A stretch of DNA of 49,733 nucleotides from Bigelowiella natans CCMP2755 (Eukaryota > Protista > Cercozoa). The notes beneath the pieces are model-generated. The model had not been told where the DNA came from, made no database searches, and saw only the letters and a list, made by a program, of their open reading frames with translations. Where the stretch lies: positions 1 through 49,733 of the forward strand of contig ADNK01003503.1 in the NCBI GenBank assembly GCA_000320545.1, read 5' to 3'. Positions within the stretch are counted from its first letter, which is position 1. The number at the start of each line of letters is the position of its first letter. Position numbers and translations under genes: made by a program. Positions 6,001 through 43,732 of the stretch are shown piece by piece.

Positions 6001-9000
6001 GTCTAATCAAATAAGGTTTACTTAGACGTAGAAAGACTTGCCGTCCTAGATTCTCATTATGGATATTCTCCTTGTCATCCTTCGCTTCCTCCTCATCCTT
6101 TATTATTTTGTGGATTAATCGTCCTTCTTCTTGTTTTTCTTCCGCAACTCCTCCTGTGATCTGGATCTCCGTTAATACCTGCGGTTCCTTGCCCTCAACC
6201 CACTCTAGAGCATTGAAACACATGCTTCTTACTACTCGCAACTTTAGATTATCCCCTAACTCACCCAAGGTTACGGAATTCGCATTGATATACGTACGCC
6301 ATATATCACGCGAAGACAAATTATCATCATACGGCCAGGTTGGTCCTTCCAAGTTAGGATTCGCTGCCGCAGCAGCAGCAGCAGCACCTTGTTTCTGTGC
6401 GGCGTAGTATCGAAGCTTTGCATTCTTCTCAAGGTCGTTCCAGATGTGGCAGTCACAAAGTGACATGACAACGTTCTCATCGACACTGCTTGAAACAACA
6501 GGCAATTTAAGAACAACGCGGCTAGCAGATATATCAAAAAGCTGTAAATGAAGCATTCTGTGCGAAATCTTCATTGTATCTCTGGCATAAGCGAAGACAG
6601 AACCTAAGATGCCCTGTGAGAAGTAGTCCCATAATTCCATCACAGGTTGATGTAAATACGTCACTTCAACCCCACGATCATCTCGCATGTGAAGTCCAAA
6701 TTTAGAATCATAACCGCAAGGAGGCCTTCGTTCCTCATCGGTGCGGATGTGCGACACACTCTCGAAATACACAGGATTTTGTCGCAGCAGCTGCTTCTGT
6801 GATATGCTCTCAGTATTAACCGAAATAGTGCTACTACGCCCCTCAAATTTTGTATCGATTGCATTTGTGTTGACAGTGGTGATGGAAGAGATATTCTTTG
6901 ATTCTTCTGTTTTCATCGTCGTTCCTGACTGCTTCTCATCCTTCGTGCTACTCTTCTTGTAATTATTATTATTATTGTTATACACGGCTAGTATCGTTTG
7001 GTTTGGACTGCCTTTTACACCGTGGATGAGAGACTCTAAAGCTACTGCTCCAATACCACCTTGGAACTTCCAGACCTTGGAGTATATATTGCGAATGAAT
7101 AAGAAATCAGTAGCTCTGAAACGTGCTAGAGCTCGTTTAGCTTTATTGAACACGATTTCAAATCGACCGACACAATATGACACATGCATCAAACACCGGC
7201 CGTCTTCGTCGTCGTCGTATTCGTCTGTACTTCTTTTTTTCTCATTTTCCTGCTTCATTTTTCCGGCGGCAGTATTGGTTGATGATGTTTCTTCTCGTTC
7301 CTTTTGTTGTTCAAAAACTCTGTATTTCTTCTCCCCCTCTTTCTCCCCTTCCTTTAGGCCATTCTTGTCGTTCTTCTTCTCCTTATTCTTTTCCGCATCC
7401 TGATTTCGCTGCTCATGTGCATTATCTTGATTTTGTTCTTGACGTCGTCGTGCTAACTTTTCTTTTTCTTCTTCATGATCACCGTCGTCACCAAATAGTA
7501 AGAACGACAATGTAGAGATAGTATCAGGATTCCATTGCAGCGCAAGTTGATCCATTTCAACCCACATATACATATCGCTTCTGCATGATGATGATGATGA
7601 TGCTAAGGACGCCTTCTCTTTTTGGTTATTGTTATATTCATATGCACCGTGGCATCGTTTTCGCGCCCACTTACGGCGTTTGGTTGTTTCTGGGCAATGA
7701 TTTGGAAAATAGAGGTATTGTATGGAAATAACTTGAGTATTGTGAGCACTCGTTTTTTCGTTCTTCTTCTTCTTCTTCTTCGCTAAGGAAGATGCAAATG
7801 ACGAGCCAAATGTAGAGGAGCGATGAGGGGAGAAGTGGTGATCGTAAGAGGATGCTAGAAAAAATTGGTCCGAGTCTGGTCCGTATTTATGATCCTTTAT
7901 TACCAATTCTTTCATGCAAACTTGCATATCCGATTCATCGTGCACCGTGTTTAGATATCGACCGCTAATTTCTGACCCAACTACACTGACAATAGGCTGA
8001 TATCGTCGCCGCAATAGCTGATCAATTGAGCTAGGATTGTTGCGGGAAGAAATAGTTGGCGGGGAGGAGGTTACTAGTGCTAAATAGTGCATTGTAAATG
8101 TACCATGAAGCCGCACGTTTAACTCAAAATGGACGTTTCTTTCATGTGCTGTGGCACTAGCATATGTGGTGATTCCTACCCATAAAACACATGAAATTTA
8201 TGAAAATAATCTAAATTTTATTTTATGGCAACGATGATGTTATATGACGTCCAAATAAGTTTCTGTGCGGTAGGGAATAGTTGTGATATATGCGATTAGA
8301 AAGATATGGAACGAAGTAGCTACATCATATTTTATGGATTATTTCCTCACAAAACTTGTAATAAATATTCGGGTTGTCTTTCGTTATTATCATCAACAAC
8401 ATCATCATTGAGTTGATTCTCACCTTTCTTTATCTCGTTTGCCTTTCTTGCACTAACCATAGCGACTTTGAGAATATCTGTCATCCAATATTGATATAAA
8501 CGAGAACCAATGCTCTCTGCCCATACCGCAGTCATGGAACAAATTTCCATTTGTGTCTTATTCCAACGATAATAATCATGATTTCGACTGTTCGCGTGAT
8601 TAATTCCTCGTTGTGTCCTTAAAACCAAGAGAGGACCTCTCTCCCTATCCTCCTCCTCCTCGCTCATCTCTTGCTTTTTTTTCGACCTGCTGCTGCTGCT
8701 GCTGGTGGTGGTGGTGGTGCTACATCTTCTAGTTCCTTTTTCAGAGACTACAAAGCTGTAGGGATCGATTTTCCTTTTGAAGATGACGATAGGCCTACTA
8801 TTTTGATTAATGTCCGTTGATGAAGTAGCGGTTATATCATGTACTACTAGGTTGGTATAGCTTATGAGCTGCTGCTGTTGTTGATTAGGGTTGTGGTGAT
8901 CTTCACCGTCGTCGTCTTTGCCATCGTCGTCGTCTTCTTCTTCATTGACGCAATTTGGTTGATCTCTAAGAGCTTTTGCCGCTACATGCGTGCCATGCTG

Positions 9001-17294: not shown

Positions 17295-18868
17295 ATGGGA
17301 TCTTTGCGCCCGATTCTCCTGTTCCTATCCTTCACTTTGAGCATTGCTGTGTGGATGAATCAAAATAATGAGCATCAACAACGACTCGACATTCAAGTAA
17401 ATGAGAAACAACCCCATAAATTTTTTGTTATCGCTATCCAGAGGTCTGGATCTGAGTGGCTAGGTAAGAATTCTCTGCCTTTCACTCAATCACTAGCTTT
17501 TCCTCATGCTTTAGTCATTAACATGAAGGTTCCCTCTTAAGGCATCACGACGACGTCATCTTCCACTACGGAGAATGTTGGCTGTATGAACAAAATAAAT
17601 CGGTTCATTGTCCGGCAATGATGATCCATCTTTTGTAGAAATCCGAAAAATCTGAAGCATTGCATTCAATGGATCAATGAGGTAAACATATGAATCCATG
17701 ACCTTTCGTACCCATAAGTACGCATTTCAGGAGAAACTACCCAGTAATTCATCTCTTGACGAGAAACTTGATCTGCTATATAGAACCAATACTCCGACGA
17801 AGGTAACGCGTGTTTTACAATGAAGCATTCTCTGAACCAAAAAAACTTGGGTAGGCATTGGCAATTGGGTTCAAATGGATGGTCAATCAAATTCCCGAAG
17901 GATATCATAAACTGCAAATGCTTTCGCATTATATCAACGCAAATAATGTTAGTGTTATTTCTTTAGGTAATCAAAGAAATATTATTGAGATTCATACTTA
18001 ATTCCTAGCCGGCATATGTATGAATGATATATCAATACTAGAACGCGAAAACCGTGTTCGGCATTGCTTCTCGCTCTTCGACGCGCACCAAAGGCACCTT
18101 CGTGGAGTCTCTGTACATAATGAGGCACATACATCTGAAAAGGCAAGTCTTACAAATCAGCATCTATCAATGTACTCCCCCTCCTGTTTCCCCATTCTCC
18201 TCACGATGTGCTAACGAACTATGCTTGGACAACGATAGAAAATCAAAGATGAAATCGTGTGGACGATAGGTATGAAAGAGTGGAATCATTGCATGCGCTG
18301 GTATGTCTAGCTTTGATCTCTTAACATAAAGATCAGCCATTAAATATAAAAGCTACTAATTTTTTTTAAAAAAATAGGTTCGACCATATGGAAAAAAATA
18401 GAGAGGAGCTTCTGTCATACATAGAACCTGGGAAAATCGTGCGAATTAAATACAGGGTTTTAAACAAAAGATCACTGAAGAAACAATTGGGCATACATAA
18501 ACTCATATGTGAATAAAAGTAGGAATACATATTATAAATATACAATTATGCACATATTTATTTATATATTTATATGTATGTATAATATTTCTTTATAAAC
18601 ATATGATATTTATATGCCATTGATACACGGCTGGCTTATTCGCGTTAATTAGGATTTGTGCTCGAATGAAACGGAAGAGCTTAGAAGATTACAGCTTTCT
18701 ATTGGTATCGGAGAGTTCAGAAAGTCGCAAGAAGTCCACGAACAAATGAAAATGCATAAATCTAATTTAAGTCGTCTTGTGAAGAACTGGGACGAGGTAG
18801 TTGAAATTCTTCCACATTATTGTTTGCGTGCGCCTATCAACAAAATATATTACTCGAAGAAGGCATGA
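17295..18868 (+). CDS. Stf0/NodH-like PAPS-dependent sulfotransferase with N-terminal signal/anchor, multi-exon
   Basis: Hydrophobic N-terminus MGSLRPILLFLSFTLSIAVW; 5'-PSB-like FFVIAIQRSGSEWL followed by a GTAAG donor (~17464); AIGFKWMVNQ; 3'-PB-like RENRVRHCFS; KIVRIKY; last exon ends at TGA 18868. Confidence 0.75.
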
Positions 18869-19626
18869 AGCAAAATGAATTAAATTTTCATAATTCTGTT
18901 ATATTTCCTGCTCCCATGTTCATAACTTAAAATCACTTCAGGTGTATCCAGAAATGGTGAAAATCTATCAAGGCTTTCCAATACAACAGTGGGTAACAGA
19001 AGCAGAGTGTCAAGGGACCTAATTGAACTCCGGTGCCCCGATATAGTGTGTCATAAGTATTAGCATTTAATCCATTATCCACTATCTTCCTGGATGCAAA
19101 CTAACCAAGCTCACAAATGTAGATGGGACAAAGATGCAAACCACTTTCTGCTCTAATAATCCTACTATTACTCTACTGCTACTACTCTACTAGTAGAAGG
19201 TGGTAGCAGTAGTACGTCCAATACTTACAGGATGAACAAATTTCTTTTTTTGCTACTAGTCCAGAGGCAGAATTGAATGTGCATTGTCATGTAGCATGTT
19301 GCTGCTGTCATGCAAGCGTACTCGGGATTTAGCTAGATCTACATCTAGAGATGTGCATGCAGCAACCGAACTGCTAGACTGGCCAATGAGAATCTCATGA
19401 TGGTGAACTTGATCGAAGGACCCGCATGCCCAACTAGTCTAGTACTGAGTGATCAAGGCCAGTCTAGCTAGCTAGCAGTGCACATCTAGAAAGCTTCTAG
19501 AGATCTCTAGATTGAACTTCGATGCATTCCAGCATTCTAGCATTTTCATGTGGATTGCACGTGCAGTGTGACATCTACTAGCTAGCTGTCTAGCTGTGTA
19601 GCTAGCTAGACATTCAAGTGCACCAC

Positions 19627-20238
19627 TGTGGTCAGTTTGCGACCACCAAATGCATGCAAGCGCGCATGCACATGCATGAGTGCAAATGGTGGTGCATGTT
19701 GTGCTTTGTTGTGTCCAACATTTTCATGTGAGCATGTTCATGTGGGTTCAGGCTGTTGTGCCCACATCTCAGTTGGCCACATGGGGGCATGTGACGTGAG
19801 TTGCATGCCCAGAAACATTGTCATGGGAGGGGGCGTGCACATCCTGAAACATCCTTCTCGGTCATTTCCCCAACCGTGGATGTTTCCAGGAGCACCCTCG
19901 GCATTTCACTTGCGACAAGGAGTCGGCCTACGTGTTGCAACATTGCAGGGGAAAATGGCCTGCATTTTCCCTGACATTTCAGGCAACTGCTGCTGCGTGG
20001 CATGTTGCTGCTGGGGACGCTGTGTGCCCAGCACGTGATGTGCATTGGCGCGCAACGCGCCAGTTTGGCATGCTCTGAAAGACCCGCAAGCAAGCGGTGA
20101 GCTTTCTCCTTTGGTGGCATGCTCATGCATGCTCACATCGTGTTGTCCATTCAACAGGGTTTTGGTTTTGTGGATTTGAAGCATTGTCAAAGCATGCATT
20201 GCACAGTTGTGTTGTCAGCGCTGCGCAATGCAACTGCA
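19627..20238 (+). repeat. 5' LTR
   Basis: TGTGGT...ACTGCA, 612 bp, ungapped alignment to 25895-26506 (~45 differences by eye, all transitions). Confidence 0.97.
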
Positions 20239-20239
20239 C

Positions 20240-20250
20240 TGGCAGCGGAC
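20240..20250 (+). promoter_or_regulatory. Primer-binding site, TGGCAGCGG (probably ancestral TGGTAGCGG, initiator-Met tRNA type)
   Basis: TGG one base after the 5' LTR; restoring CA->TA gives TGGTAGC, complementary to the ...GCUACCA 3' end of many eukaryotic tRNA-iMet. tRNA identity is an inference. Confidence 0.7.
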
Positions 20251-23200
20251 GAACTGCGTCAAGGGGAAGATCAAGGGAACTCATTTGGGGCTCAGGGGGA
20301 GCCCAGAAACCATGCAGAGGAAGCTGAGAGCAAGGAATCCAAGATTGAAAATCCGGAAGTTTCGACGGGTGGCCATGCGTCACGGGAAGGTGTCCCAGTG
20401 GCTCAGCCCGTGACTTCTGGACGTTCAAATGAGCTTGGATCGGGCGCCCGGCATTCCCTGACGGTGGATGAGGTTCTGGAGCAGTTTGGTGACCTGACTG
20501 TTTCAGCAGGCCGACGAGTTGCAAAGTGTGTTTTGCACTGCGACGGTGTTGACAAAGGTGTGTCTGGTTTGGTCAGAACGATGACTGCTGACTTGGAGTC
20601 GCGAGAGTTCGCATTTCATCGTTGTTTGGATGAGGGAACAACTTTGCGAACTTGGGCCTGCACGATGAAGAAATGCAGAGACCCAGATTGTGCTCCGCCA
20701 GGTGTGGTGGACAGGATGGAGCGGAAGGCCAAGCTGCAGCCTTCGGTCCGAGACATTGCGGGTGCCATCGACTCGTTTCGACGGCACTGCCCTGTCAAAG
20801 GCAAGCTGTGTGTGGCCACTGTGAGCCCGGCACAGTTCCGCAGGAATGCTCGTGGGCTTCACAATGAAATTGAAGCACACGCTGCTTTGGTCGGCCAAGC
20901 CGACTTGGGGTTCGGTTGTGAATGTCTCCAGACGTGTTTGTCCTCTCGTGCGCTTGAGAGGCTCCGTCGGGAGGCCACAAGGAATGCACATGCTTCTGAG
21001 AGCCCAGAGACCCAGTTTGAGATGGCTCTGCAGCACCTCTGCGATGAGGAGGATGAAGAGAAGCTTCAGCGCGACTTCGAGGATGAGCTCGATTTTCTTC
21101 GGCGAAAGCGGTGTCGATGTGTTGATGCGACACACCGGCAGTTTGGCGAGCTTCTTCTGGAGTTTGCTGGACTTCACTTTGGGCATGCTGACAAGTTGCG
21201 GTGCTTCCGGCGCTTGTTGGTGGGTCATCAGTCACGTGACAAGTTCATCGCGCCACTTGACGGATTTGCGCCGCACGACGTCGATGGACTTGTTGAGTTT
21301 TTGCGGCCACTGGAGGAGAGCCATTGCAAGTTTGCGGCTCATCCTCTGCACGCTGATGCATCCACAGTTGCAGGACCTGCGGTGCAACGCGAATGCGTGC
21401 ACTTTTCCAAACGTGGGAAGTGCAATTGCGGTGATGAGTGCAAATTTTTGCACATCAAGCAAAGTTCTGCAAGTGAGCAGAGTGAGCAGAAATCCAAGCA
21501 GTGCACCAAGGAGCAGCTTGATGAGGTGAAAAATCAAGACTGCAGGCTTTGTCTGAAAGGCAAGTGCCATCATGGGGACAAGTGCAAGTTCCGCCACAAT
21601 GCTGGGAGTCTTGATGCTGCTGGAGGGGCGAATGCTGATTTGGCCTCTCATGCCTGTGAGGAATCGGCGGATGCTCCAAGGCAAAACACGGAGGCATCGT
21701 TGCTGCAGGTCAACTCCCAGTCACTTCCCAAGTTGATGAAGGAAAGTGAGCGTCGTCACTGTGAACGAGACCCAAGTTTGAGGTCTCGGAAGAAAGCAAA
21801 ATGCTCCCTGCAGGCGGATGACGGCGCTGTTGCAGTGCTTGGGTCAATCGACGATGGCGCTCAACCTGCCACCATTTCAGAGGCTCCGTGCCAAAAGTTG
21901 AAGTCCTCTGGTGTCAGGTTTGGACGTGGGCCGATGGTGGGTGAGGTGGGTGGCCTTGGTTCATCGATTGAGAATGAAACTTTGCGGGAAGTCGATTTCA
22001 TGGTCCAGATCAAAAAACACAAAAAGCATGGAGCGCACGTTGAACTCCGAATTTGTGCTCTGGTGTCACCTGGACCGGTCTCGCAGGACTTTGCATTGGG
22101 CATGGGCACCCTTGACATGAATGGCATCAACTCTGTTGAGGATCCTGACCCAGCAAAGCGAATTGTCACCATTGATGGTGAAATCGTTGATTCACATCCG
22201 TGCAGCGTCGACGTGCTTTCGGCGACTGTTGTGACCGTCGTGGGCATGGATGTGCCTCCGATGGCAGCTGCTCCCGGCGAGATTTGCAGCATGGATGCTG
22301 ACGCCGTGGGAGAATTGCCTGGAGTGGAGGAGGCATCGTCTGCAGTTCGAAAAGAACCACAAAATGCCGTGGATCATGACTTTGTGAACAATCATGACCA
22401 CACGATCAATGCACAAGGTTTGCCTGATGTCGACATCAAATCGATGGCAAATCCCATCGAATCGGATGGAGTGCTTCTCCAGCGATCATCCAGCATTGCA
22501 CCGTCATCAGAGTTTGGCGACCAACGTGCAGTCGCTGACTCTGACTTGGCAAACGGCCACGTGCTGGACGTGCTTGATCGCTTGGAGAACGAGGTGGTGA
22601 CGAAGGAGAGCTTGCTGCCGGGTTCACAGCAATTCCATTGCCTTCGCACTGTCACTTGCCGCTTCCGGAAGTGTTTTGTCGTGAAACTGCCGGAGGTGGG
22701 AAAGCACGAGCTGCGGGAACCGCACGACGTCAAGCGATGGCTGAAGCCGGGCTGCAAGCCGGTTCGCCAGCGGCCTCACCACTTGGAGCCGAACAAACTT
22801 GAGCTCATGAAGCTCAAGCTCGACCAAATGGCAAGCGATGGGTCACGTCACGAGGTGACAAACGACACATCTGAGTGGGTGTCGCCAGCTTTTTGTGCAC
22901 ACGATGAAGGAAAAGCATCACCACGCGTCGTGGTGGCGATGGGTCGCTTGAACGAGCTCGTCGAGCTCGTGCACGCTGTTTGCCCTGTGACTCGGGACAC
23001 AACAAGAAAATCAATGAGTGCTCAATGGGTGACAGTCTCTGATGGCAAAGCTGCATGGAGACAGCTTGGGATGACTGAGTGTGCGAAAGTGGTGTTCGCA
23101 TTTGTTGCTCTGTTCGCGTCGTTTGCATCTGGCAAGCGACGGCTTGCCGATGGGGCACAAGAACGCTCCTCAAGTTTGGGTCGAGGAGATGGCCACAAGG

Positions 23201-25861
23201 TTCCTCGTTGGGACACCAAACGCTGTTGTGCATTTCGACGACTTCTTTGCCATTGGACAGTCGCCGATGCAAGCGCTTGCAGGTTTTGCCAAGTTTGTGC
23301 AACAGTGCGAAAAGTGCAACAATCATCAAAGTGCTGCCAAGTTGCACACTTTTCCCAAGCGACTTGCAGCAGTGGGTTTGATTGAGGAAGCGAAGACTCA
23401 CCATCCAGATCCCAAGCGCACGGTTGCTGTGGACAAGCCAGAGCGACCAACAAAAGGGAGGCGGTTCTCAAAGCATGTGCGCCGTCTTGTTGGTTTGTTC
23501 ACTTATTGTTTGGAACACACGAAAGGCTTCTGGCAAATCGCTGCGCCGATGAAGGATTTGCTCATGCAAGGAGCGGCACAAGCATGGACAGCGAAGCATG
23601 GTGAAGCTTTGGACACATTGAAAGGCATGCCAAAGAAGGCGGTGTTGTGTGCACCTGATCGTGAAGCTGCACCTGCAAGCCAGCCACTTGTTCTTGACAC
23701 TGACGCGTCTGATGTGGCTGGAGGTGCCACGCTTTCCCAGGTTGTTGGTGGGAGCGAACGCCTGCTGGCTTGTTGCTCGTTTGCGTGGAAGACAAACGAG
23801 AGGAGCTGGCACGTTGCACGAAAGGAGCTTGCGGCTGGAGCGAAGGGGCTTCACCGGTTCCAGCACATTGCTGAAGGCTGTCCGATTTCAATTCGCATGG
23901 ATGCGAAAACGGCGCGGCATTTCGCGCTGCACGGAGTGGACAAAGTGCAGCTGCCGCATGCAAGATTGAGCGCGGCACACTCTGGATGTCCGTTGGTGGA
24001 CATCCAACATGGAAAGGGGGAAAAGCACACCAATGTGGACCCTTTCTCGCGGCCGGATGCTGACGAAACTCGCGACGAAAGGAAGTCGCATCGTCAGTCG
24101 CTGGCCTCTCTTTTCCCGCTGCATGCGGAGGCGGCGAAGCAAGAGGAAAAGCTGGTGAAGTCTGAAGCTTCTCTCTCCTCTTGCTTGGCCAACGAGACGA
24201 TGATCGAACTCGAAGTCCCTCATCTCTCTGTTCATTCTGCAGAGTTGCAGCCTTGGGCGTGCTGTGCTGCAGAGGTCCAGGTGTCGACGACGCTGTCCAA
24301 CATCAACTTGGAGCAGCAGCGTCCCGATTTTGAGAAAATCATCGATGCTCTCGAGGACGAGAAGAATGCCAATCATCTTCTCGTTTCCTCCAAACACAAA
24401 ATGGCTTCTGGTGAGCTGTGTCACACGGGCTCCTTCCAAATTGGAGGAGACATCCCGCTGCAACTTTGTGCACCTTCTGGAAAACGACAGGAGGTGCTGC
24501 AGGCGCACCATGTGGACAGTGTGGCGAATCATCGCAATGCAGATGATCTCGCAAGGAAAGTTCTGCGCGGCTGTCACTGGGTTGGAGTCCAGAAAGCCTG
24601 TCGTGGATTTGCAAGGCAGTGCCAGGTCTGCACTCGTGCCAAAACGCGCACGAAACAGGCGCCGTGTCCACAACATGGCGATCGCGAAATTGATGGCACG
24701 ATTGCAGTGGATGCAATCGGCCCTGTCGACGGCGCTGAGCACTGCACGCAGACGCTGTGCGTTGTGGCCATTGGTCACATGCATGCAAGGGCAGTGAAGC
24801 GCACAAGCTCGGCGCGCACGGCGGATTTCATCGTGTCGCATGTGCTGAAACACGGATGCCCAAAGCAGATCATTGTTGACCAAGGGCCGGAAAACGTGGG
24901 CAAAACTGTGCAGCACTCACAAAATCGGCTGCGGCCAAAGTTTGTCAAGATGTCAGCTGAGAATGGCCAGGGGAACTCTGCACTCGAGCGGAAGCATCGA
25001 CCCATTGACAATGGGATCATGGCGATGCTTCTGCAAAGTTTGGAGGACCGGCACAACTGGCATGAACACTTGGAAATGATGACACTTGGTGTGAACACCA
25101 CAATCGATGAGTGTGGTCATTCACCGGCTCACCTCACGTTTGGACATCAGCCAAAGTTCGTGGCTGATGTGGAGAGCAAGTCGGTGGCGGCTCCAGGGAC
25201 CGGGGACCTCGATCAGAGGATCCAAGATCTGGAAAAGATGCGGCTGCTGCGTGCTGCTCTCAAGGAAAATTGTGAATTGGTGAAAAATTTCACGAGAAAC
25301 GAGAAGCTCAATGCTCAAGACGAGTGCAAAGCAGGGGACATGGTGTGGCTTTTCCGCAAGGAAAATCGCAAAGAAAGTGCTGTCACGAAAAAACGTGAAA
25401 TCAAAAAGACTGGCCCTGTGACTGTCGTGGCCAGGAGCAGCAAATCCCATGCCTGTCAAATCATCGACCCGAAGACGGGGCACAACAACAATGCACACGC
25501 GAAACACCTTTCGCCTCGTGGTGCACTTGCCCCGTTGCCAGAAGTGCGCCCGGCAGCTCCAGACATTGAGGACAATTTTGCTGGCGAGGATGATGAGGAT
25601 GCTGATGGTTCCTCCAGCTCGTCGGACTCCCAGGGGCCTCCTGGTGACCGGATTTCACGGGATGACGTTGTTCAAGGTGAACGCAATGGGAGACCAACCA
25701 ATGTTGGTCCGTGCATTTCTTGGATTTTGTGTTTTCGCAAACACGTGCCACTGCACAAACAAATTGGTGGCGGTGCAGTTGGTGCAAAAATTTTTTTTCT
25801 TCCCTTTTCTTCTGATTTTCTTTTGGCACGCGTGATCCTGCTCGTGTGTCATCATTGTTGA
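20251..25861 (+). pseudogene. gag-pol polyprotein pseudogene (Gag with two CCCH fingers, protease, RT, RNase H, integrase); frameshift at ~23115-23140
   Basis: ORFs 20119-23385 and 23081-25861. PR IDDGAQ; RT KPVRQRPHHL, SEWVSP, LPMGHKNAP, VVHFDDFF (HFDD at 23231-23242); RNase H LDTDASDVAGGATLSQ, RKEL; IN HH..H/CQVC, VDAIGP, VDQGPE, ALERKHR, GDMVWL. True start and stop uncertain because TAA/TAG codons have been erased. Confidence 0.93.
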
Positions 25862-25872
25862 GTCAGGGGTGC

Positions 25873-25894
25873 AAAAAATGGGGGGGGGGGGCAG
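25873..25894 (+). promoter_or_regulatory. Polypurine tract
   Basis: AAAAAAT, a run of G, then CAG, directly before the 3' LTR. Confidence 0.88.
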
Positions 25895-26506
25895 TGTGGT
25901 CAGTTTGCGACCACCAAATGCATGCAAGCGCGCATGCACATGCACGAGTGCAAATGGTGGTGCACGTTGTGCTTTGTTGTGTCCAACACTTTCATGTGAG
26001 CATGTTCATGTGGGTTCAGGCCATTGTGCCTGCATCTTGGTTGGCCACATGGGGGCATGTGACGTGAGTTGCATGCCCAGAAACATTGTTGTGGGAGGGG
26101 GCGTGCACATCCTGAAACACCCTTCTCGGTCATTTCCCCAACCGTGGATGTTTCCAGGAGCACCCTCGGTGTTTTGCTTGCGACAAGGAGTCGGCCCACG
26201 CATTGCAACATTGTGGGGGAAAATGGCCTGCATTTTCCCCAATGTTTCAGGCAACTGCTGCTGCGCAGCACGTTGCTGCTGGGGACGCTGTGTGCCCAGC
26301 ACGTGATGTGCATTGGCGCGCAACGCGCTGGTTTGGCATGCTCCAAAAGACCCGCAAGCAAGCGGTGAGCTTTCTCCTTTGGCAGCATGCTCATGCATGC
26401 TCACATCGTGTCACCTGTTCAACAGGGTTTTGGTTTTGTGGATTCAAAGCATTGTCAAAGCACACATTGCACAGTTGTGTTGTTGGCGCTGCGCAATGCA
26501 ACTGCA
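25895..26506 (+). repeat. 3' LTR
   Basis: 612 bp, TGTGGT...ACTGCA, followed by TSD ACCAC. Confidence 0.97.
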
Positions 26507-26993
26507 ACCACAATCTGCACCAGTGCAATGCATGTCCAGATGTCGTGGTCACATCACGGTGCTCACATGCTGGCATGCTAGCTCTCTGGCTCCAGAGCTG
26601 ACCAGCCAACTGCAGCGTGCTGGCATGCTCTGGTGCTGCATGTCCAGATCGCATCCAGAGATGTCTGGGTGTGCCTGCGCTAGCCAGCTAGCTGCGTGCT
26701 GATGTGACCTAGTTGGCTAGCTAGGACGGCATCACAGCATGCTGGCATGTCTGGATGTGTTGTCCATGTCTAGATGTGCACAAACAATTCCAGATTTGCA
26801 TGCCCACCTCTGGACCTAGCCACAGCTAGGTGGTGCCAGCTCCAGAGCTAGCTAGATGTGTCTTCGTCCTCCTCCAGCTGCTGTGAACACTCTGGACCTG
26901 TCAACTCAGGAACAACTCTGGAACTCCGGAACCATCCACAGCTCCAGAGCTGTCTAGCTGCGTGTGCCAGTTGTGCCCCAGCTGCCAGTCCAG

Positions 26994-28430
26994 CATTGAA
27001 CATTGAACATTGAACATTGAAAAAAACATTGATCAAAACTGCGTGCGCCAGAACCACATGGGAGACAGGCATGCTGGCATGTGCACGCAGCAGAGCCTCA
27101 ACAAACATCATTGCAAGGACTTGTCATCATCCTGTTGAAGGTGAGTCATCCGGGAGTGAAGGCAAACAGCCGTCAATTGTCAGGTCATGGGAGCAGTCAG
27201 AATGTGTCCAAACTCTGACAGCTCAGAGTCAGGAAGGAAAAACTAGCTAGCTAGGAGCGCCCAACGGGGAGAAACCAGACTGGCGATCAGACAGCAGCGA
27301 AATCATCGAGAAGAACAATGGTTCGACGGAAAGCCCTGTCGATTTCTTTGTCAGTGGAAGTGTCACAGAAGAAACACCAGACGTGGTCTAGCAGTGTGCG
27401 TGTGTTGGCCAACTAGCCAAGCTCCAGAGCTAGAGAGCTCCAGAGCTGATCAAAGACCAGCAATGCCAGAATGCACGCACCGACGCGAAAGAACCGTGAG
27501 ACCGTGAGCATCAATGATTCAACCAATGCACCTAGCTAGCTAGCTAGCCAGGCTGTCAGGCCAACTCTGCTGGTCCAGAACTAGCTAGATGGCCAATTCC
27601 ATGGTCTTCTGACCGTCACCGGATCTTTGCTGACAAATTGAAGTCGCCTCTGGTGCCGATCGTCCATCATCATGATTCATGGCATGTGCGTGTCGTCAAA
27701 GAAGCACGGTGAGCACAGATCAATGAACAATGAACAATGAACAATGAACAAAGCGTTGATCAAAAACTGCATGCGCCAGAACCACATGGGAGACAGGCAT
27801 TTGCACGCAGCAGAGCCTCAACAACACTCGTGGCAAGGCTGGATCCAAAATGAATTTCACAGATGATTTCCTTCGGATCGTTTCAGTCAATGAACAATGA
27901 ACAATGATGATGAACTGCATTTCCAAAAATTCTGAAAATGTTGCGAGACATTTGCAGTCACACTCACAAAAATGAAGACAATGAACAATGAACAATGAAC
28001 AAAGCGTTGATCAAATCTGCATGCGCCAGAACCACACGGGAGACAGGCGTTTGCACGCAGCAGAGCCTCAACAACACTCGTTGCAAGGACTTGTCAGCAC
28101 CCTGTTGGTGATGAGACACAAAAACCAGCTAACAAGCCATCAGAGGCTCCAAAAAAGCCGCGTGAAGGGATGAAGTTGCCATGGCTACCCATCTGAAGCG
28201 CCGGAGCCGGAACAAGGGATGAAGTTGCCATGGATGCTGTTTGTTGGTGCCGTTGAAATGTGAGTGGATTGCAACTGAAACTGGCAATTGGAGTGGCGAA
28301 CAGCAGCAAAATTGTCAAGCAGGACAATGGTTCTACGGAAAGCCCTGTCAATTTCTTTGTCAGTCGAAGGGACACCAGATCTGGCCCCCAAAGCAAGGCA
28401 GAACTGACAATTCCCTTTTTTCTTCACAGA
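26994..28430 (-). mobile_element. Cluster of three related truncated elements with heptamer-repeat tails (probable non-LTR retroelement 3' ends)
   Basis: Copies at ~26994-27370, ~27721-27838 and ~27979-28430 share TTGATCAAA..CTGC.TGCGCCAGAACCAC..GGGAGACAGGC..TGCACGCAGCAGAGCCTCAACAA; each starts with (CAATGAA)n or (CATTGAA)n. 27316-27360 also matches 28325-28369. Orientation and class inferred from the tails. Confidence 0.6.
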
Positions 28431-29052
28431 AACGCTTCTCAGTAGGTCTAGGTTGGGATGAAACTGTCAAAAGTAGATGATGTCCTTGTTCAACACGCAG
28501 AACAATTTTTATTTGCGACATGATTTTGATTAAGACATCCGAATGTCTAAAAAGAAGCACAGAATCTGTGATGGAAAGTGGATAAAGATGTTCTTCTGTG
28601 TGTTTAAGTAAAATCCCATGGAATATGTTAAGATTACCCATTTGACCTCACTAATTTCAGACTAAATGACAGAAGACATCACATTCCAAGATGTTCTAAT
28701 TAAGACACAATATGTCTATAGGTAAAATGAAACAAATTCAAATTTACATGAATTTTTGCATTCGATGAAAAATAATATTTATAAAGGTGGCCATTTCCAA
28801 CATCTGATAGATTTGAGATATCTCCTGTAGTTTTGAGAGAAGCTTGTTATACACTATACGTTCTTATCACATTAAAGACAATCTCGAAAGAGGAATTTTT
28901 GAAGAAATAGATACTTCATCGAAGACGAGTTTCATAGATGTGATCTTATGGATGAAAATTCAGCTTAAGGCTGAATAATTCCTATATTAAATGTCACTCA
29001 GGGTTTTCTTACCCCTCCTTCCTATAATCTAGATCGGGATTTTAACACGTAT

Positions 29053-32000
29053 ATGAGTAACAATAGGGGTAAGAGAGCCATAACTCACACAAATAGCCGC
29101 AATGTAAGTAGAATTCCTCGAGCTACCAAGGAAAGAAATAGTCGATCGAATAATTCCAGCACCATCTCGAACGCTGCGAACCCGGCCTCTCGCGCATCGC
29201 GTCGTTCCGGACGAAGTGGAAGGAAAAGACGTCTTCAATCTGAAACAAAGGCTCAAGGGTCCTCATCTGCGAACGCTGTATCAAAATCGCAGAGTAGCAG
29301 TAGCAATGCGGATGCGAATGATGATGATGGGCACATCTTTGTTGCTGTTCGTCCTCGCCCGCTCACTACCCAGGAGCTAGCCAAAGGGAGCTGGACGTGT
29401 GTGGAAGTACGGGGAAAGAAAGTTGTACTTCAAGACCCTAAAGATGCTACCTCAAAGGATCCACTTCATAGAACACGTGCTACAAATTTCTCCCTGGATG
29501 CAGTTTTTACTGCGGAGGCGGACCAAAAGAAAGTGTTCGACGCAACTTCGAAAAGGATCATAGGAAGCATCCTTAACGGAAAGAATGGAACTATATTTGC
29601 CTATGGGGCCACAGGTTCAGGAAAGACATACACTATGACAGGGACTGCGAAGAATCCAGGGCTGATCCCTAAAATAGTGTCAAGTCTCCTAAAGAGGCTA
29701 GAGCATGATCAACTTCCCTTTCGAATAAAAGTTTCTTATATCGAAATTTACAATGAAACTATGCGAGATCTTTTAACTGATCCAGACGGAAGACAACGAC
29801 CGGTTGCTTTGCGTGAGCATCCATCTAAAGGGGTAATGATAATGGGGTGCCAAGCACGAGAAGTACAAACAGAGCATGAAGTAGATGCAGTCATAAAAGA
29901 AGGCGATTGTAATCGTGCCACAGATAGCCATAGTCTGAATAAGACATCTAGTAGAAGCCATGCCATCTTCCAGATGAAAATCTTGGTAGGAAATAAGAGA
30001 GTACCGATAAAACTCTCTCTCATAGATCTAGCAGGAAGCGAAAGAGCCAAAAAAACAAAGACGGATAAGAAGATGCTTAATGAGGGAGCCAATATCAATA
30101 AATCTCTCCTTACTCTAGCCAAGTGTATAACAGCTCTTGGAATGAAATCCAAAAAGGGTCTTTTCATACCCTATCGTGATAGCAAACTAACACGAGTACT
30201 GAAGGATTCTCTTTGCGGTGACTGCTCAACCTCAATGATAGCTTGTATATCTTCTTCTTCGTGTCAGGTAGTAACAATAGTGCTCACTATCATGCAGATA
30301 AACATGAAACTGACGATACCAAAAAACAAATACTGAATATAAGTATCATATTTTCAGCATGCATGTAATAGTTATCCATCTCCTTTGTTGACATTTTCAA
30401 AATCTAAACAGTTTGACGAGACAAGAGAAACTTTGACGTACGCACATCGAGCTAGAAATGTAAAAATAAAACCTTTGGAGCAAACTCGAGTTAAGATACA
30501 TCGAGAAGAGTATAACAAAATGGTGGGAGAGATGAAAGAAGAGTTGGGTAGGTTAAGGAGTACAATTGGTTATAGCGACATGAATAAGCAATTAATTGAG
30601 ATTGAAAGAAGTGGGTCAGATACAAAAGACTCACCAGCTTCAGGGATAAAGGGAAATCCTGTAAATTGTAATAAGGAAGCAGCACAGAAACTTGCAGATG
30701 AACTTGTTCAAAATTTTCAAGATCGCATTCAAGCACGACAGAGTATGTTGGAGCTGAGAGAACAATCAGCCTCAAACATGACTCAAGTAAGTGATTTACA
30801 GCATCAGCTGGGAGAAATGGCAAGAAGGTTGCCTACGGATTCTAAAGCAAAAATTAAAACTGTTTATAAAATGAGAAAGCAAAAAATAAGAGACATAACT
30901 AAGATGTTGCGGAAGCTTGGGGAGGGGGAAAATACCAACACTAAGATGTACAATGAAATGAAGGAAGAGCTCCAAAAACTTGAAAGTCAGGGCCATATGT
31001 TAATGGAAAAAGCTGCTAGGTCAAAATGGTCAAAGGAGGGTAAACATGTGTTACGTTCAACGATAGAGAGGTGCATGATGGAACTGAAGAATGCTGAACA
31101 TGAACTCCATGCGCGATTTCTAATGAGCAAACTCACATCCCAGGAGTCGGCCATAAAATCGCAACAACAGCTCCTGAAAAAACACAATATATCCTTTGTA
31201 CCTCTAGATGAAAGAATGAAGATTTACAATGATTTGCACAAGGAGTTCAGATTTGGTAGTAAGGCACCAAAGCTAGAATTTGGTGCACATAATGCTGAAA
31301 TGAAGAAGAAAGTAAAGATGCAGAAGAGAAGTGGAGAAGGTCGACAGCTGTTACAAAATGTATCCCAGACTAAGAAATCCTCCTCAAAAGCCAATACGAC
31401 CAAATCAACACACTTCGATAAGGCGAAGCTCTCTGCAGCAACTGCAGCAGCAGCATCCCGACGCAACAGACGCCGTGTGCTAAAAACAGCAAAATCAACA
31501 CCTTCAATGCGTATCAATAGCAAAATTAGGTTTGATCTCAAGTCGAACAACGCACAAAGGAAGAACCGAAACCATCTAAAAAATTATAGGAGATCCCAGC
31601 AGAAGAGCATAAGTAGGAGAATGTCTCGATGGGCAAGAAGGGCACCAAGTGTAAGCGGGGTAAGAAAAACAGCTCCAGCTGTTGGAAGAAGAAGAGGATA
31701 CTACAAGGCTCGATCCACGGTAGCTCGGAAAGACAGTAGAAATAATAGAACTGGTGTTAGTGTTATCAAAAATAGCAGCTTTGCCGCAGCAGCTGCTCGG
31801 GCTCCTCCAGGTAAGATTGACTCTATCGGCAAGGTAAAAAGTCATCTAGGATTCAGCAATCGCCCATCTCCATCTCTTCTGAATAGTAACTTGAAAGAAG
31901 CACAGTCTTCGCCATCTTTTTCGACCGGATATGCTGGTTTGGCCCTGAAGCAAAAACAGCAACGAAAGTCACGGCGAGCTCGTTCCAGAATTTTGCAGAG

Positions 32001-41002: not shown

Positions 41003-41749
41003 CTCTAACTCTCTCCTCCCTGCTCCCTTACTCTCTCTCTCGATTCTTTTAGCACCGTATGGTATGAGCTTACGTCCTGTAACCTAAAAAATGAACAATA
41101 TCTCACAAGCACGGCGCGAGCACATGACATATCCGCACGCACGTTGGCACCACGTTTGAACTTGTATCTGTTCATTACCATTCATTACTATTATCATTGT
41201 TTTGTTCGCCTACTACTACAACACACCGCAAGTTTCTCCTTGAAGGAAGTGCATGTCTTGGGATTGCACATAGTACGCATCTAATAGAAAGATAACATCA
41301 TTGGAATGGAAAGGCAGTCCATATGTAAGAAGAGAGCAGCGATTTGGTACCTCATAGAATTTCGCAATGAGATCTGGTCTTCGGACTCTAACAATATCCT
41401 CAGACTCCCAGGTGTATCTGATGAGGAAGGAGAGAGAGAAGACAAAAAAACATCATGTTATTCTAGCAATCCTCGTGACATTGAAAGTTAGAGACATCAT
41501 TTGTGTTCGAATTTTTGTTGCTAATACAATCTGAAGCCCCTCCATCGAATCATAAAGGAATAAGGCCCGTCGTCATTGCCCGGATTGATACTCCGTCGGC
41601 TTATGATCTCCTCCATCACACTCGGCAGTCCTCCGACGGCTTTCCCTCCTGTCAATGATCAAGTTCAGCTGTTCCCGCGTTCTTCCCGCTCACAGTGCAG
41701 TGAATTGTTGCAGCTCGTTTTTGCCAGTGTCAGTTGTAAATCTGTTGTC

Positions 41750-41965
41750 GTCATTGAAAATGACATGCACTTCTGTCTCCAGATCCTTTCAGATGTAGTC
41801 TGTTTGTTTCTTTTTTGGAGTCATGCCATTTTGGCATCCTAGCTAGTTGATCTGCTAGTCACAGTCCTCACTGAAATCAGTTCGAGGCACTGCATTTTGC
41901 ACACTGCAAGTGTCTTGCTACACTTTGGAAATGTAGTTTTTCATCATTGTTTCATTGTTTCATTG
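41750..41965 (+). repeat. Dispersed repeat copy 1 (TpA-mutated), ends in TTTCATTG-type repeats
   Basis: Aligns with ~46715-46975 (AGTCCTCACT.AA..AGTTCGAGGCACTGCA...TTTGGAAATGTAGTTTTT.ATCATTGTT). Confidence 0.75.
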
Positions 41966-42230
41966 GATGAGGGTTGGTGCTCCTTGTGCAAGTCCCACAA
42001 AGACGTCCCCATCCAACACCTTCTGTTTTCTTGTCAAGGAACGTCTGACATCAGACACCGTTTTTGGAGCAGGGTTCGTCACCTCATCTCTCGTCATCTA
42101 GCTGAACCTCGTGATGAGGTTGTCAACCTGCGTGTTTTTTCGTCCATGTCTTCACTGGAAAAATTGCGCTCTTGCTGGTGATGCAGGTGGGCCATCAATC
42201 ATCGTTCATGATGACTGGATGCGTGCAACT
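41966..42230 (+). mobile_element. Non-LTR retrotransposon ORF2 C-terminal fragment (CCHC zinc-finger region)
   Basis: WCSLCKSHKDVPIQHLLFSCQGTSDIRHRFW fits the C-x2-C-x(n)-H-LL-x2-C...R...W motif at the end of LINE ORF2 proteins. Confidence 0.65.
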
Positions 42231-43732
42231 GTGAGTCTGGCTAGCTGGCACATGGCTAGACAGCAAGCTGGCCTAGTGGCAGGAATGAGCAGGCACATGC
42301 TCACACCACTAGACCGGCCCACCTAGCCCACCTAGCCACGCTAGCACGCTGATGACACGTGCAGCAGAGACACAGTCTGGCAGTGTTGTCCAGTTGTGTA
42401 CACATCCACGATGCGCATGCCAGCATGTGTCATTTTGTCCCTTTGCGTGTGTTCTCGTGTTCTCTGCAACGCATGTGCACATTCAAATTTCCACGTGCAC
42501 CAGCTGCGCCACGCACGTCTGGACGTGTCTGCTTGATGTTCATGCGAAGGTGAGGAGTGCACATTGGCACACGTGTGCAGGCAGACTAGCAGGCTTCACA
42601 TGGAGCAATTTGCAAAATTAGTGAGTTTGTGTGAACAAAACTTGTGAAGGCGTTGACATGTTGCTGTCATTGAGCAAGCTAGCAAGGCCAGAAGGTGGCG
42701 CTCACAGAGCCAGAGAGACACAGTGCTCAGAGTGTCATGTGCGTCTGTGATGACACACATCTTTTTTTCTCTTCATTGCACACCGCCACGCACGTGGCGC
42801 AACGTGCTAGCGTGACACTTTTCATGTGGAATCACAGTCCCCATGCGTGCAAGCCGTCTGCGACATGTCCATCAACCACTTCACATGTCTGGATGTGCCC
42901 CCGTGCAACCACGTGAGCACGCATGTGTCGTAGTTTGTTTGGTGCATGTGTGGACGTGAACAGAGCATGTGTGCTTTTCAAGTGCACCTGAAGTGCATGG
43001 GTGCATGTGTTCTCTTTCGATCGTGCACTAGCTGTCAGCATGTGGACTTGTGGTCCCCATGTTTTGACACAATGCTAGAATGCCCAGCTAGCGCGCAGCT
43101 AGCGATGGTGCGGATCGATGTCAGCAATTAACACGATGCATGCGCACCCATGCACCGTGTAATGCGTGCAATAATGTGTGTGCATGTGCAGCATGCGCTG
43201 CTGTGCCCATCCATGGTCTCGACCGTGCGCTCATCTAGTCATGTACATTTGTCTAGATTTGAAACAATGTCATTGTTGTTGTATTTCCATCGATCAACAC
43301 TAGAACACAACGAATGCAATGGTCTACAAATGCTGCCCCAATGTTTCTCTGGGGCATACATGGTAGAGATCATGGCTGCAATCCCTACTGCACACGGACG
43401 CAATCCATGCAAGTCGCATTAATTATAGTACAGAACCCATGCTAACAAATCATGCCTTCACAAAAATATTCTGGATGAAGTCTCAAGGTCTAGCCTTCGT
43501 TACGACTGAGAGCATCATAGCAGTAGCTTATTTCATTTTAAGGTCGCTTGGTTGAGAATACGCCATCGTAGTGGTATTGTAACCAATCGACGAATAACAT
43601 GCCGGGATTTTCTTCTTTGGGTCAAGGACGTGCTGATACATGTAACAATAACACAACCGGGTCAAACACTGAATGAAGTAAATGTATCTCATAAATTAGC
43701 TAGTGTAAAATATACGTTAGGTACATATTGAC

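Follow-up and report, generated by a model that had tools for sequence, protein, structure and literature searches.

How do the two long terminal repeats (LTRs) of a single retrotransposon come to differ by 7.4% without one transversion between them? The question is raised by an element at positions 19627-26506 of a 49,733-nucleotide stretch of the Bigelowiella natans CCMP2755 genome (contig ADNK01003503.1 of assembly GCA_000320545.1; hereafter the window, meaning the stretch at its full length). The element is 6,880 bp long and is bounded by a 5-bp target-site duplication (TSD), ACCAC, perfect on both sides, and by 612-bp LTRs with TG...CA termini. Ungapped comparison of the 5' LTR (19627-20238) with the 3' LTR (25895-26506) shows 45 differences in 612 bases, 45 of 45 being transitions, with 0 transversions and 0 indels, all as a preliminary description of the locus had it. 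These differences group into 19 adjacent doubles and 7 single T/C differences. Every double sets TG in one LTR against CA in the other (10 CA/TG and 9 TG/CA), exactly 19 sites where about 19 had been counted by eye; placed at random, 45 differences give ~3 adjacent pairs and at most 10 in 20,000 trials. One of the seven singles, at 19929, pairs TA with CA, again as originally noted. Only two TA dinucleotides are left in the whole element (19929 and 23504), and its CpG observed/expected ratio (o/e) stands close to normal at 0.80-0.85. An assembly artefact is excluded, since contigs from DNA sequenced independently, in runs of 2021 and 2025, match with zero differences both stretches of the element and the segment (26454-27023) in which the 3' LTR meets its flank.

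Very probably, the LTR pair is explained by a DNA mutator that acted after insertion, was specific to TpA and ran to saturation. The mutational process itself is not new, localised TpA hypermutation of integrated viral DNA having already been described in B. natans, where TpA changes were found arising in a mutation-accumulation experiment (Mettrop et al., bioRxiv 10.64898/2026.01.13.699255, 2026). What the retrotransposon adds is an end state of the process that is dated by its own LTRs and can be compared with untouched sister copies.

Unmutated sister copies and the ancestral state

A search of the same genome with the LTR gave 49 matches, of which 29 are near-full LTRs: 12 carry 49-52 TA, 15 carry 0-4 TA and 2 carry 13-15 TA. 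The 12 TA-rich LTRs are at least 99.67% identical to one another, and three full unmutated copies contain 514, 514 and 511 TA, with a GC content of 0.463 and a CpG o/e of 0.99, and encode a single 1812-residue open reading frame (ORF) with CCCH fingers, reverse transcriptase (RT), RNase H and integrase. The reference against which conversions were scored is a real unmutated copy from the same genome and not a consensus. Because this reference carries TA at 18 swap sites out of 19 (and TG at the other), TA and not CG is the ancestral state at the swap sites, and the direction of change first proposed, from TA to TG or CA, is supported. Across the element, the 514 TA sites of the reference now read TG at 224, CA at 224, CG at 20 and TA at 4. 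The element has lost 99.6% of its TA sites by conversion, against about 2-5% of A/T in other contexts, and its GC content is 0.542 vs 0.463 in the full unmutated copies.

Before the composition of the element was known, the default reading of such swaps was the decay of methylated CpG, in which each site was once CG and decayed by deamination in both LTRs, becoming TG in the one and CA in the other; double decay leaves the same footprint. That reading is refuted by the TA found at the swap sites of the sister copies. The element, moreover, has more CpG than the unmutated copy (399 vs 358) but 2 TA in place of 514; both LTRs retain many intact CpG, and tyrosine codons have become histidine or cysteine codons. 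We consider the likelihood of CpG decay to be practically nil.

Timing, saturation and LTR dating

Relative to the young subfamily, the two LTRs have 7 transversions (7 of 7) and about 31 transitions in common; this and the perfect TSD indicate that the element inserted once and that its LTRs underwent conversion afterwards, each on its own. Of the 51 sites that are TA in the unmutated sister LTR, 28 are TG, 19 CA and 2 TA in the 5' LTR. Forty-seven sites have been converted in both LTRs, 29 of them concordantly (TG/TG 19, CA/CA 10) and 18 discordantly (TG/CA 9, CA/TG 9). Discordance at 18 reference TA sites in the product of one insertion means that the mutator acted on the element after it had inserted, as had been proposed. 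Independence predicts 22.6 discordant sites where 18 are seen (Fisher p 0.23), which is consistent with the suggestion that each TA was resolved separately in each LTR. The arithmetic offered with that suggestion did not survive: 50:50 outcome odds and ~38 original TAs (in agreement with 612/16) had been assumed, whereas the LTR started with about 51 TA and the concordance between the LTRs is 62%, not 50%.

Editing before integration, either of RNA by an ADAR-type enzyme or of cDNA by deamination as in APOBEC3, has in its favor that retroelements are the classic targets of both. ADARs also prefer a 5' U. The same preference is given in the discussion of Mettrop et al. (10.64898/2026.01.13.699255). 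LTRs made from one template would nevertheless share their edits, and 18-19 sites are discordant here; edits would be expected to be strand-asymmetric, and TG and CA outcomes are equal in number; DNA beside the LTRs that is not part of the element has been converted too; and in the accumulation experiment of 10.64898/2026.01.13.699255 the mutations arose in resident DNA during culture. Pre-integration editing is refuted for at least three-quarters of the sites, with a small pre-insertion share compatible with the concordance taken alone, and as an explanation of the pair it is left with very little probability.

Two other mutated copies, designated C976 and C2965, have LTR pairs that can be set beside this one. 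The element has 18 discordant sites, 0 transversions and 0 indel columns; the C976 pair has 18, 1 and 5, and the C2965 pair 17, 2 and 19. As discordance is flat (18, 18 and 17) while transversions go from 0 to 1 to 2, TG/CA discordance is a saturated plateau rather than a clock and does not track ordinary wear; swaps that scaled with transversions would have spoken for drift, and in these three mutated pairs there is no such scaling. Three unmutated LTR pairs, for comparison, differ at 0-1 base. This plateau and the 99.6% loss of TA bear out the original characterization of the process as fast and saturating.

The standard reading of LTR divergence would instead make this an old element shaped by ordinary drift, 7.4% corresponding to ~10^8 generations. 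Its pair has 0 transversions, 0 indels and 0 G:C>A:T changes, although the baseline mutation spectrum of the species is AT-biased with a transition/transversion ratio of 7; all of its differences lie at TA or at the ApT off-target sites considered below, and its discordance is no different from that of more worn pairs. Ordinary drift therefore has a negligible chance of being correct.

The tables of Mettrop et al. (10.64898/2026.01.13.699255) list 206 TpA mutations in about 5,980 callable TpA over 3,132 generations, a rate of 1.1x10^-5 per TpA per generation, and an ordinary rate of 3.46x10^-10 per site; the ratio computed from these published figures is ~3x10^4. The rates were obtained from laboratory lines and viral inserts and not from this element, so that absolute times are rough, and the copies of this family are probably outside the callable genome of that study. 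On that footing the fall from 514 to 2 TA would take about 5x10^5 generations; over such a span each LTR should gain 0.11 ordinary changes, in keeping with the zero ordinary differences seen. The absence of ordinary LTR differences caps the age of the element at ~7x10^6 generations (95%), against 1.1x10^8 generations by naive dating of the 7.4% divergence. It had been anticipated that LTR divergence would badly overestimate the age, and the naive date is indeed at least 15-fold, and up to 200-fold, too old. Since a saturated pair is 7-12% diverged whatever its age, LTR divergence is unusable for dating retrotransposons in this genome.

The history of the locus would then be as follows. A Ty3/gypsy-type element with about 514 TA, ~51 of them in each LTR, would have landed in a spacer rich in CTAG, ~2.5 kb upstream of a kinesin gene, in a single event that left a 5-bp TSD. 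A local mutator acting at the level of DNA would then have changed one base per TpA on either strand, a hit on the upper-strand A giving TG and a hit on the lower-strand A giving CA. Conversion would have continued to a loss of 99.6%, leaving ~40% of LTR TA sites as TG in one LTR and CA in the other, and a process ~3x10^4 faster per site would have reached saturation before any ordinary LTR difference arose.

Besides the borrowed rates, other points weigh against this account. The unmutated copies belong to a younger subfamily that is ~7% diverged from the element at non-TA sites, and are not its direct ancestor. TpA is a palindrome, so that deamination of A and a T-directed chemistry are inseparable from sequence. 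Lastly, the 62% concordance between the LTRs would on its own allow up to ~1/4 of the conversions to have preceded insertion. Unrelated mutated copies show the same excess (60-64%), however, and among 15 mutated LTRs the strand that was hit depends strongly on the site (chi-square 198, 47 degrees of freedom), for which reason site bias, with a few sites that were not TA in the element's own parent, is a likelier source of the excess concordance than mutation before insertion.

Mode, context and chemistry of the mutator

TG and CA outcomes are not only balanced (224:224) but randomly ordered along the sequence (runs tests, z = 0.44, 0.72 and -0.64 in three full copies), and neither these tests nor those on the two LTRs gave any sign of processivity. 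Hits are single-site, strand-random and non-processive. Since single sites are hit on either strand, RNA or cDNA editing and damage coupled to the transcribed or replicating strand are excluded. Some 4-7% of TA sites end as CG, which we read as a second hit.

The preliminary description also listed six single T/C differences between the LTRs. That count is correct, and the six are not background drift: all six are T>C, all are in the 3' LTR, and all occur at CA[T]N (A then T on the other strand). Four of the five non-TpA mutations in the list for nucleocytoplasmic large DNA viruses (NCLDV) of 10.64898/2026.01.13.699255 are likewise T>C, at ATG or ATT. Away from TA sites, the changes private to full copies are A:T>G:C more often than G:C>A:T (81 to 54 and 87 to 34), against the AT-biased baseline of the species; the A:T>G:C changes favor a pyrimidine after the A. 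These non-TA changes are read as off-target hits of the same mutator at ApT, at ~1/100 of the on-target rate.

The two LTRs of C976 appear to have received unequal doses: the 5' LTR (738-1342) has 39 CpG, 7 of 51 TA sites as CG and many extra A>G/T>C changes, and the 3' LTR (6991-7596) has 26 CpG and no TA site ending as CG. At 22737 of the window, the A of the reference is read as G by the sole covering contig in each of three later DNA runs (2021, 2025). Its context, G[A]TG, is that of the off-target class. The base may have changed since the reference was made, or a paralogue may have been cross-mapped, G being present in one old copy. Candidate new TpA changes in later-culture DNA from the right flank were rejected as cross-mapping from sister copies or the other LTR, for they form clusters of TG/CA swaps on single short contigs.

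TA sites are not all converted at one pace. In the slow class the T is preceded by C or the A is followed by G: in one of two solo LTRs that are 73% converted (C3272:52158-52763 and C3707:3055-3664), 13 of 22 slow sites survive against 0 of 27 others (p 2x10^-6), and in saturated copies the surviving TA are 5.4-fold enriched for this class (p 0.004). A G follows the A in 23 of the 226 new mutations of 10.64898/2026.01.13.699255 (hand count). Effects of the -2 and +1 bases are inseparable by strand choice, the flanking pair playing both roles, and the rule is reported here in combined form only. CTAG has the slow feature on both strands and should be the slowest context of all; accordingly, 25 of the 30 TA left in the right flank of the element lie in CTAG. 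Conversion of CTAG is slow, but CTAG is not immune: the CTAG sites of the unmutated copy have been converted at 9 of 9 positions in this element and at 7 of 9 in C976. In the right flank, CCAG and CTGG together reach 23 per kb vs 4.3 elsewhere, a five-fold excess that marks converted CTAG.

As to chemistry, the odds are in our estimation about even that a TadA/ADAT-like enzyme works on DNA and deaminates adenine to hypoxanthine, which is read as G. The natural context of tRNA A34 deaminases is U33-A34-N35, with an invariant U before the target A and a free following base. TadA, ADAT2/3 and the TadA-derived adenine base editors convert A into I, read as G, and the position of A34 after U33 resembles the strict T seen here. 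Their natural substrates are tRNA loops, whereas the present footprint is on chromosomal double-stranded DNA; we know of no natural TadA/ADAT member for which activity on chromosomal double-stranded DNA has been established at such a scale. A strict T and a looser following base would fit the ADAT2 proposal of Mettrop et al. (10.64898/2026.01.13.699255), without proving it. Candidate genes are present in the genome, with at least five loci that have TadA as best match (C980:65331-65633, C3623:3017-3217, C3286:4241-4645, C1679:96915-97226 and C3588:86000-86131), those on C980 and C3623 being close paralogues with an HAE...PCPMC motif. A further deaminase-fold locus matches PF00383 (C570:97110-97790), and one A_deamin gene of ADAT1/ADAR type has ~135 unassigned residues before its domain (C2414:14438-15741).

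On the palindromic TpA every observed change can equally be written as T>C, and the T before the A might have been oxidized to 5-hydroxymethyl- or 5-formyluracil, which would mispair with G; 5-formyluracil does mispair. No TET/JBP-type gene matched above the Pfam cut-off (best exon-level score 23.5 bits vs 34.9), which is weak evidence, as an exon-by-exon search is not very sensitive. With TadA-type loci and an A_deamin locus present, and a target context that resembles that of the tRNA A34 deaminases, thymine chemistry seems unlikely.

Targeted copies and the surrounding island

Loss of TA is not confined to the element. The TA-free island extends over about 19340-28480, and mutated sister copies have TA-poor flanks of 0.4-1 kb. 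In the right-hand part (26507-28480) 30 TA are left, and there is no non-CTAG TA in 26507-28129; TA density is normal from about 28510, and the kinesin gene, whose start codon at 29053 lies ~540 bp further on, is untouched. On the left, a CTAG-rich fringe (19340-19626) has 3 non-CTAG TA in 286 bp where ~19 are expected. A sharp left edge exactly at the 5' LTR is rejected, since almost every TA within the 286 bp that precede the LTR is part of a CTAG.

An island that reaches beyond the element on both sides, and TA-poor flanks around mutated sisters, are what one would expect if the element had simply landed in a constitutively hypermutable region. The sister copies make a position effect alone improbable. 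At C236:64628-71488 a pristine copy with 514 TA, whose LTRs differ at 1 base, sits within the truncated 3' LTR of an old saturated copy; on either side it is flanked by DNA with 1 TA per 1.5 kb, and TA density switches abruptly where the two meet. Six of the eight unmutated insertions lie in TA-depleted DNA (chance 2x10^-5 on the assumption that 10% of the genome is of this kind), and at the measured rate their LTRs allow less than about 900 generations of exposure. The young subfamily, comprising the 12 LTRs at least 99.67% identical and the three full copies, is wholly untouched: low-level targeting was looked for in the full copies, and their ~11 independent substitutions include 2 from TA to CA, no excess. 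Within the family as a whole, new copies are mostly in old TA-free islands and pristine, older copies are saturated, and hardly any are intermediate. We infer that targeting is switch-like and copy-specific, perhaps with a lag after insertion.

The C236 copy belongs to a transposon nest (C236:56243-76886) made up of the saturated copy, the pristine copy nested in it and, 3.7 kb further, a second pristine copy in reverse orientation. The DNA beside the nest copies is TA-free where sampled (63128-64627, 71489-72988 and 73746-75245).

As in Mettrop et al. (10.64898/2026.01.13.699255), A:T to G:C transitions turn TpA into TpG or CpA, are confined to TpA, fall on either strand and are local, with foreign DNA hit and host genes spared, and both data sets have the ApT class of T>C off-targets and a dearth of hits with G after A. 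That study deals with two viral inserts still half full of TA, together with TpA-poor gene models and 1-kb windows, and its main text is without LTRs, retrotransposons, CTAG, sequence context or saturation. New here are the timing and saturation given by LTR pairs, the plateau that voids LTR dating, hits at single sites on random strands, the slow conversion of CTA/TAG and most of all of CTAG, off-target hits at ApT, and pristine copies inside TA-free islands. Fungal repeat-induced point mutation (RIP) resembles this process in being a defense-like, near-saturating burst of transitions in DNA that ruins transposons after insertion and shifts their composition. Unlike RIP, the changes here are A:T to G:C (GC rising from 0.46 to 0.54) and the target is TpA, not CpA; nor does duplication act as a trigger, a repeat-based trigger being disfavored because the near-identical young subfamily is untouched. 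The main target in 10.64898/2026.01.13.699255 was, besides, single-copy. APOBEC3 (on cDNA) and ADAR (on RNA, favoring a 5' U) share with this case deaminase-style clustered transitions in retroelements, but both act before integration and on one strand and would leave the LTRs alike, whereas here the LTRs differ and the strands are equal.

A tentative proposal, which we regard as somewhat less likely than its opposite, is that repetition, foreign origin and position are each insufficient, that a switch-like state of single insertions directs the mutator, and that the extended fingerprint (a strict T before the A; slow conversion where C precedes the T or G follows the A, CTAG being slowest; ApT off-targets; no processivity) could identify the enzyme, which would be a natural editor of A to G in chromosomal DNA. 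A family in which some copies are mutated and others untouched amounts to a natural experiment on strand choice, context, off-targets, domain limits and copy targeting, and the rules that it reveals restrict the candidates for the enzyme, perhaps an adenine editor that acts on DNA in nature.

The element itself, all of whose features are on the forward strand, is classed as a Ty3/gypsy-type LTR retrotransposon on account of its RNase H and integrase zinc-domain matches. It has LTRs ending in TG...CA, a short TSD (19622-19626 and 26507-26511), a primer-binding-site-like stretch, a polypurine tract and the domain order RT/RNase H/integrase. The 5' LTR retains 1 TA (19929, context CCTACG) and the 3' LTR retains 0, with its six extra T>C absent from the 5' LTR. 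The putative primer-binding site (20240-20257) starts with TGG one base past the 5' LTR, a position and start typical of LTR elements, and the polypurine tract, a run of A then a run of G, adjoins the 3' LTR (25872-25894). An open frame at 20119-23385 covers the gag to RT part; it has no tyrosine codon left and is no longer recognized by Pfam, whereas CCCH zinc fingers and RVT_1 are found in the corresponding part of the unmutated copy, RVT_1 as a weak match and there only. A second open frame (23081-25861) covers the RNase H to integrase part, with RT_RNaseH_2 at about 23585-23893 and Integrase_H2C2 at about 24473-24649, and is shifted by a 7-nucleotide insertion relative to the single 1812-residue ORF of the unmutated copies. 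The sole TA of the internal region (23504-23505, context CTTATT) is also its sole surviving tyrosine codon. No RNA reads were found on 22701-25900 in the ~6% of one RNA run that was read, which is no sign of expression rather than a sign of silence.

The 74 tyrosine codons of the unmutated ORF are now 37 histidine, 27 cysteine, 6 arginine and 1 tyrosine, and its stop codon is TGG. TAA and TAG together number 461 over six frames in the unmutated copy and 2 in the element, where 29 ORFs of at least 100 residues are found on both strands and TGA is the only stop remaining. Loss of TAA and TAG in six frames thus creates many long false ORFs, which probably explain many of the unannotated TpA-poor gene models listed in 10.64898/2026.01.13.699255.

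Around the element, CTAG density is 18.5 per kb in 18600-19626 and 12.5 per kb in 26507-28500, vs 2.6 elsewhere, with none inside the element; many former CTAG in the right flank are now CCAG or CTGG. Within that flank, 27978-28405 is a copy of a high-copy ~430-bp repeat with hundreds of candidate copies in the genome, of which 11 of 11 sampled have 0-4 TA. The copies share 70 nearly fixed TG or CA columns and have no more than 7 TG/CA swap columns, so that the family was already poor in TA when it spread, whether as a mutator escapee or as a saturated copy that was still spreading. A second TA-depleted, CA/TG-rich stretch of the window lies at 41500-43000, with a TA o/e of 0.18-0.37 and a GC content of 0.52.

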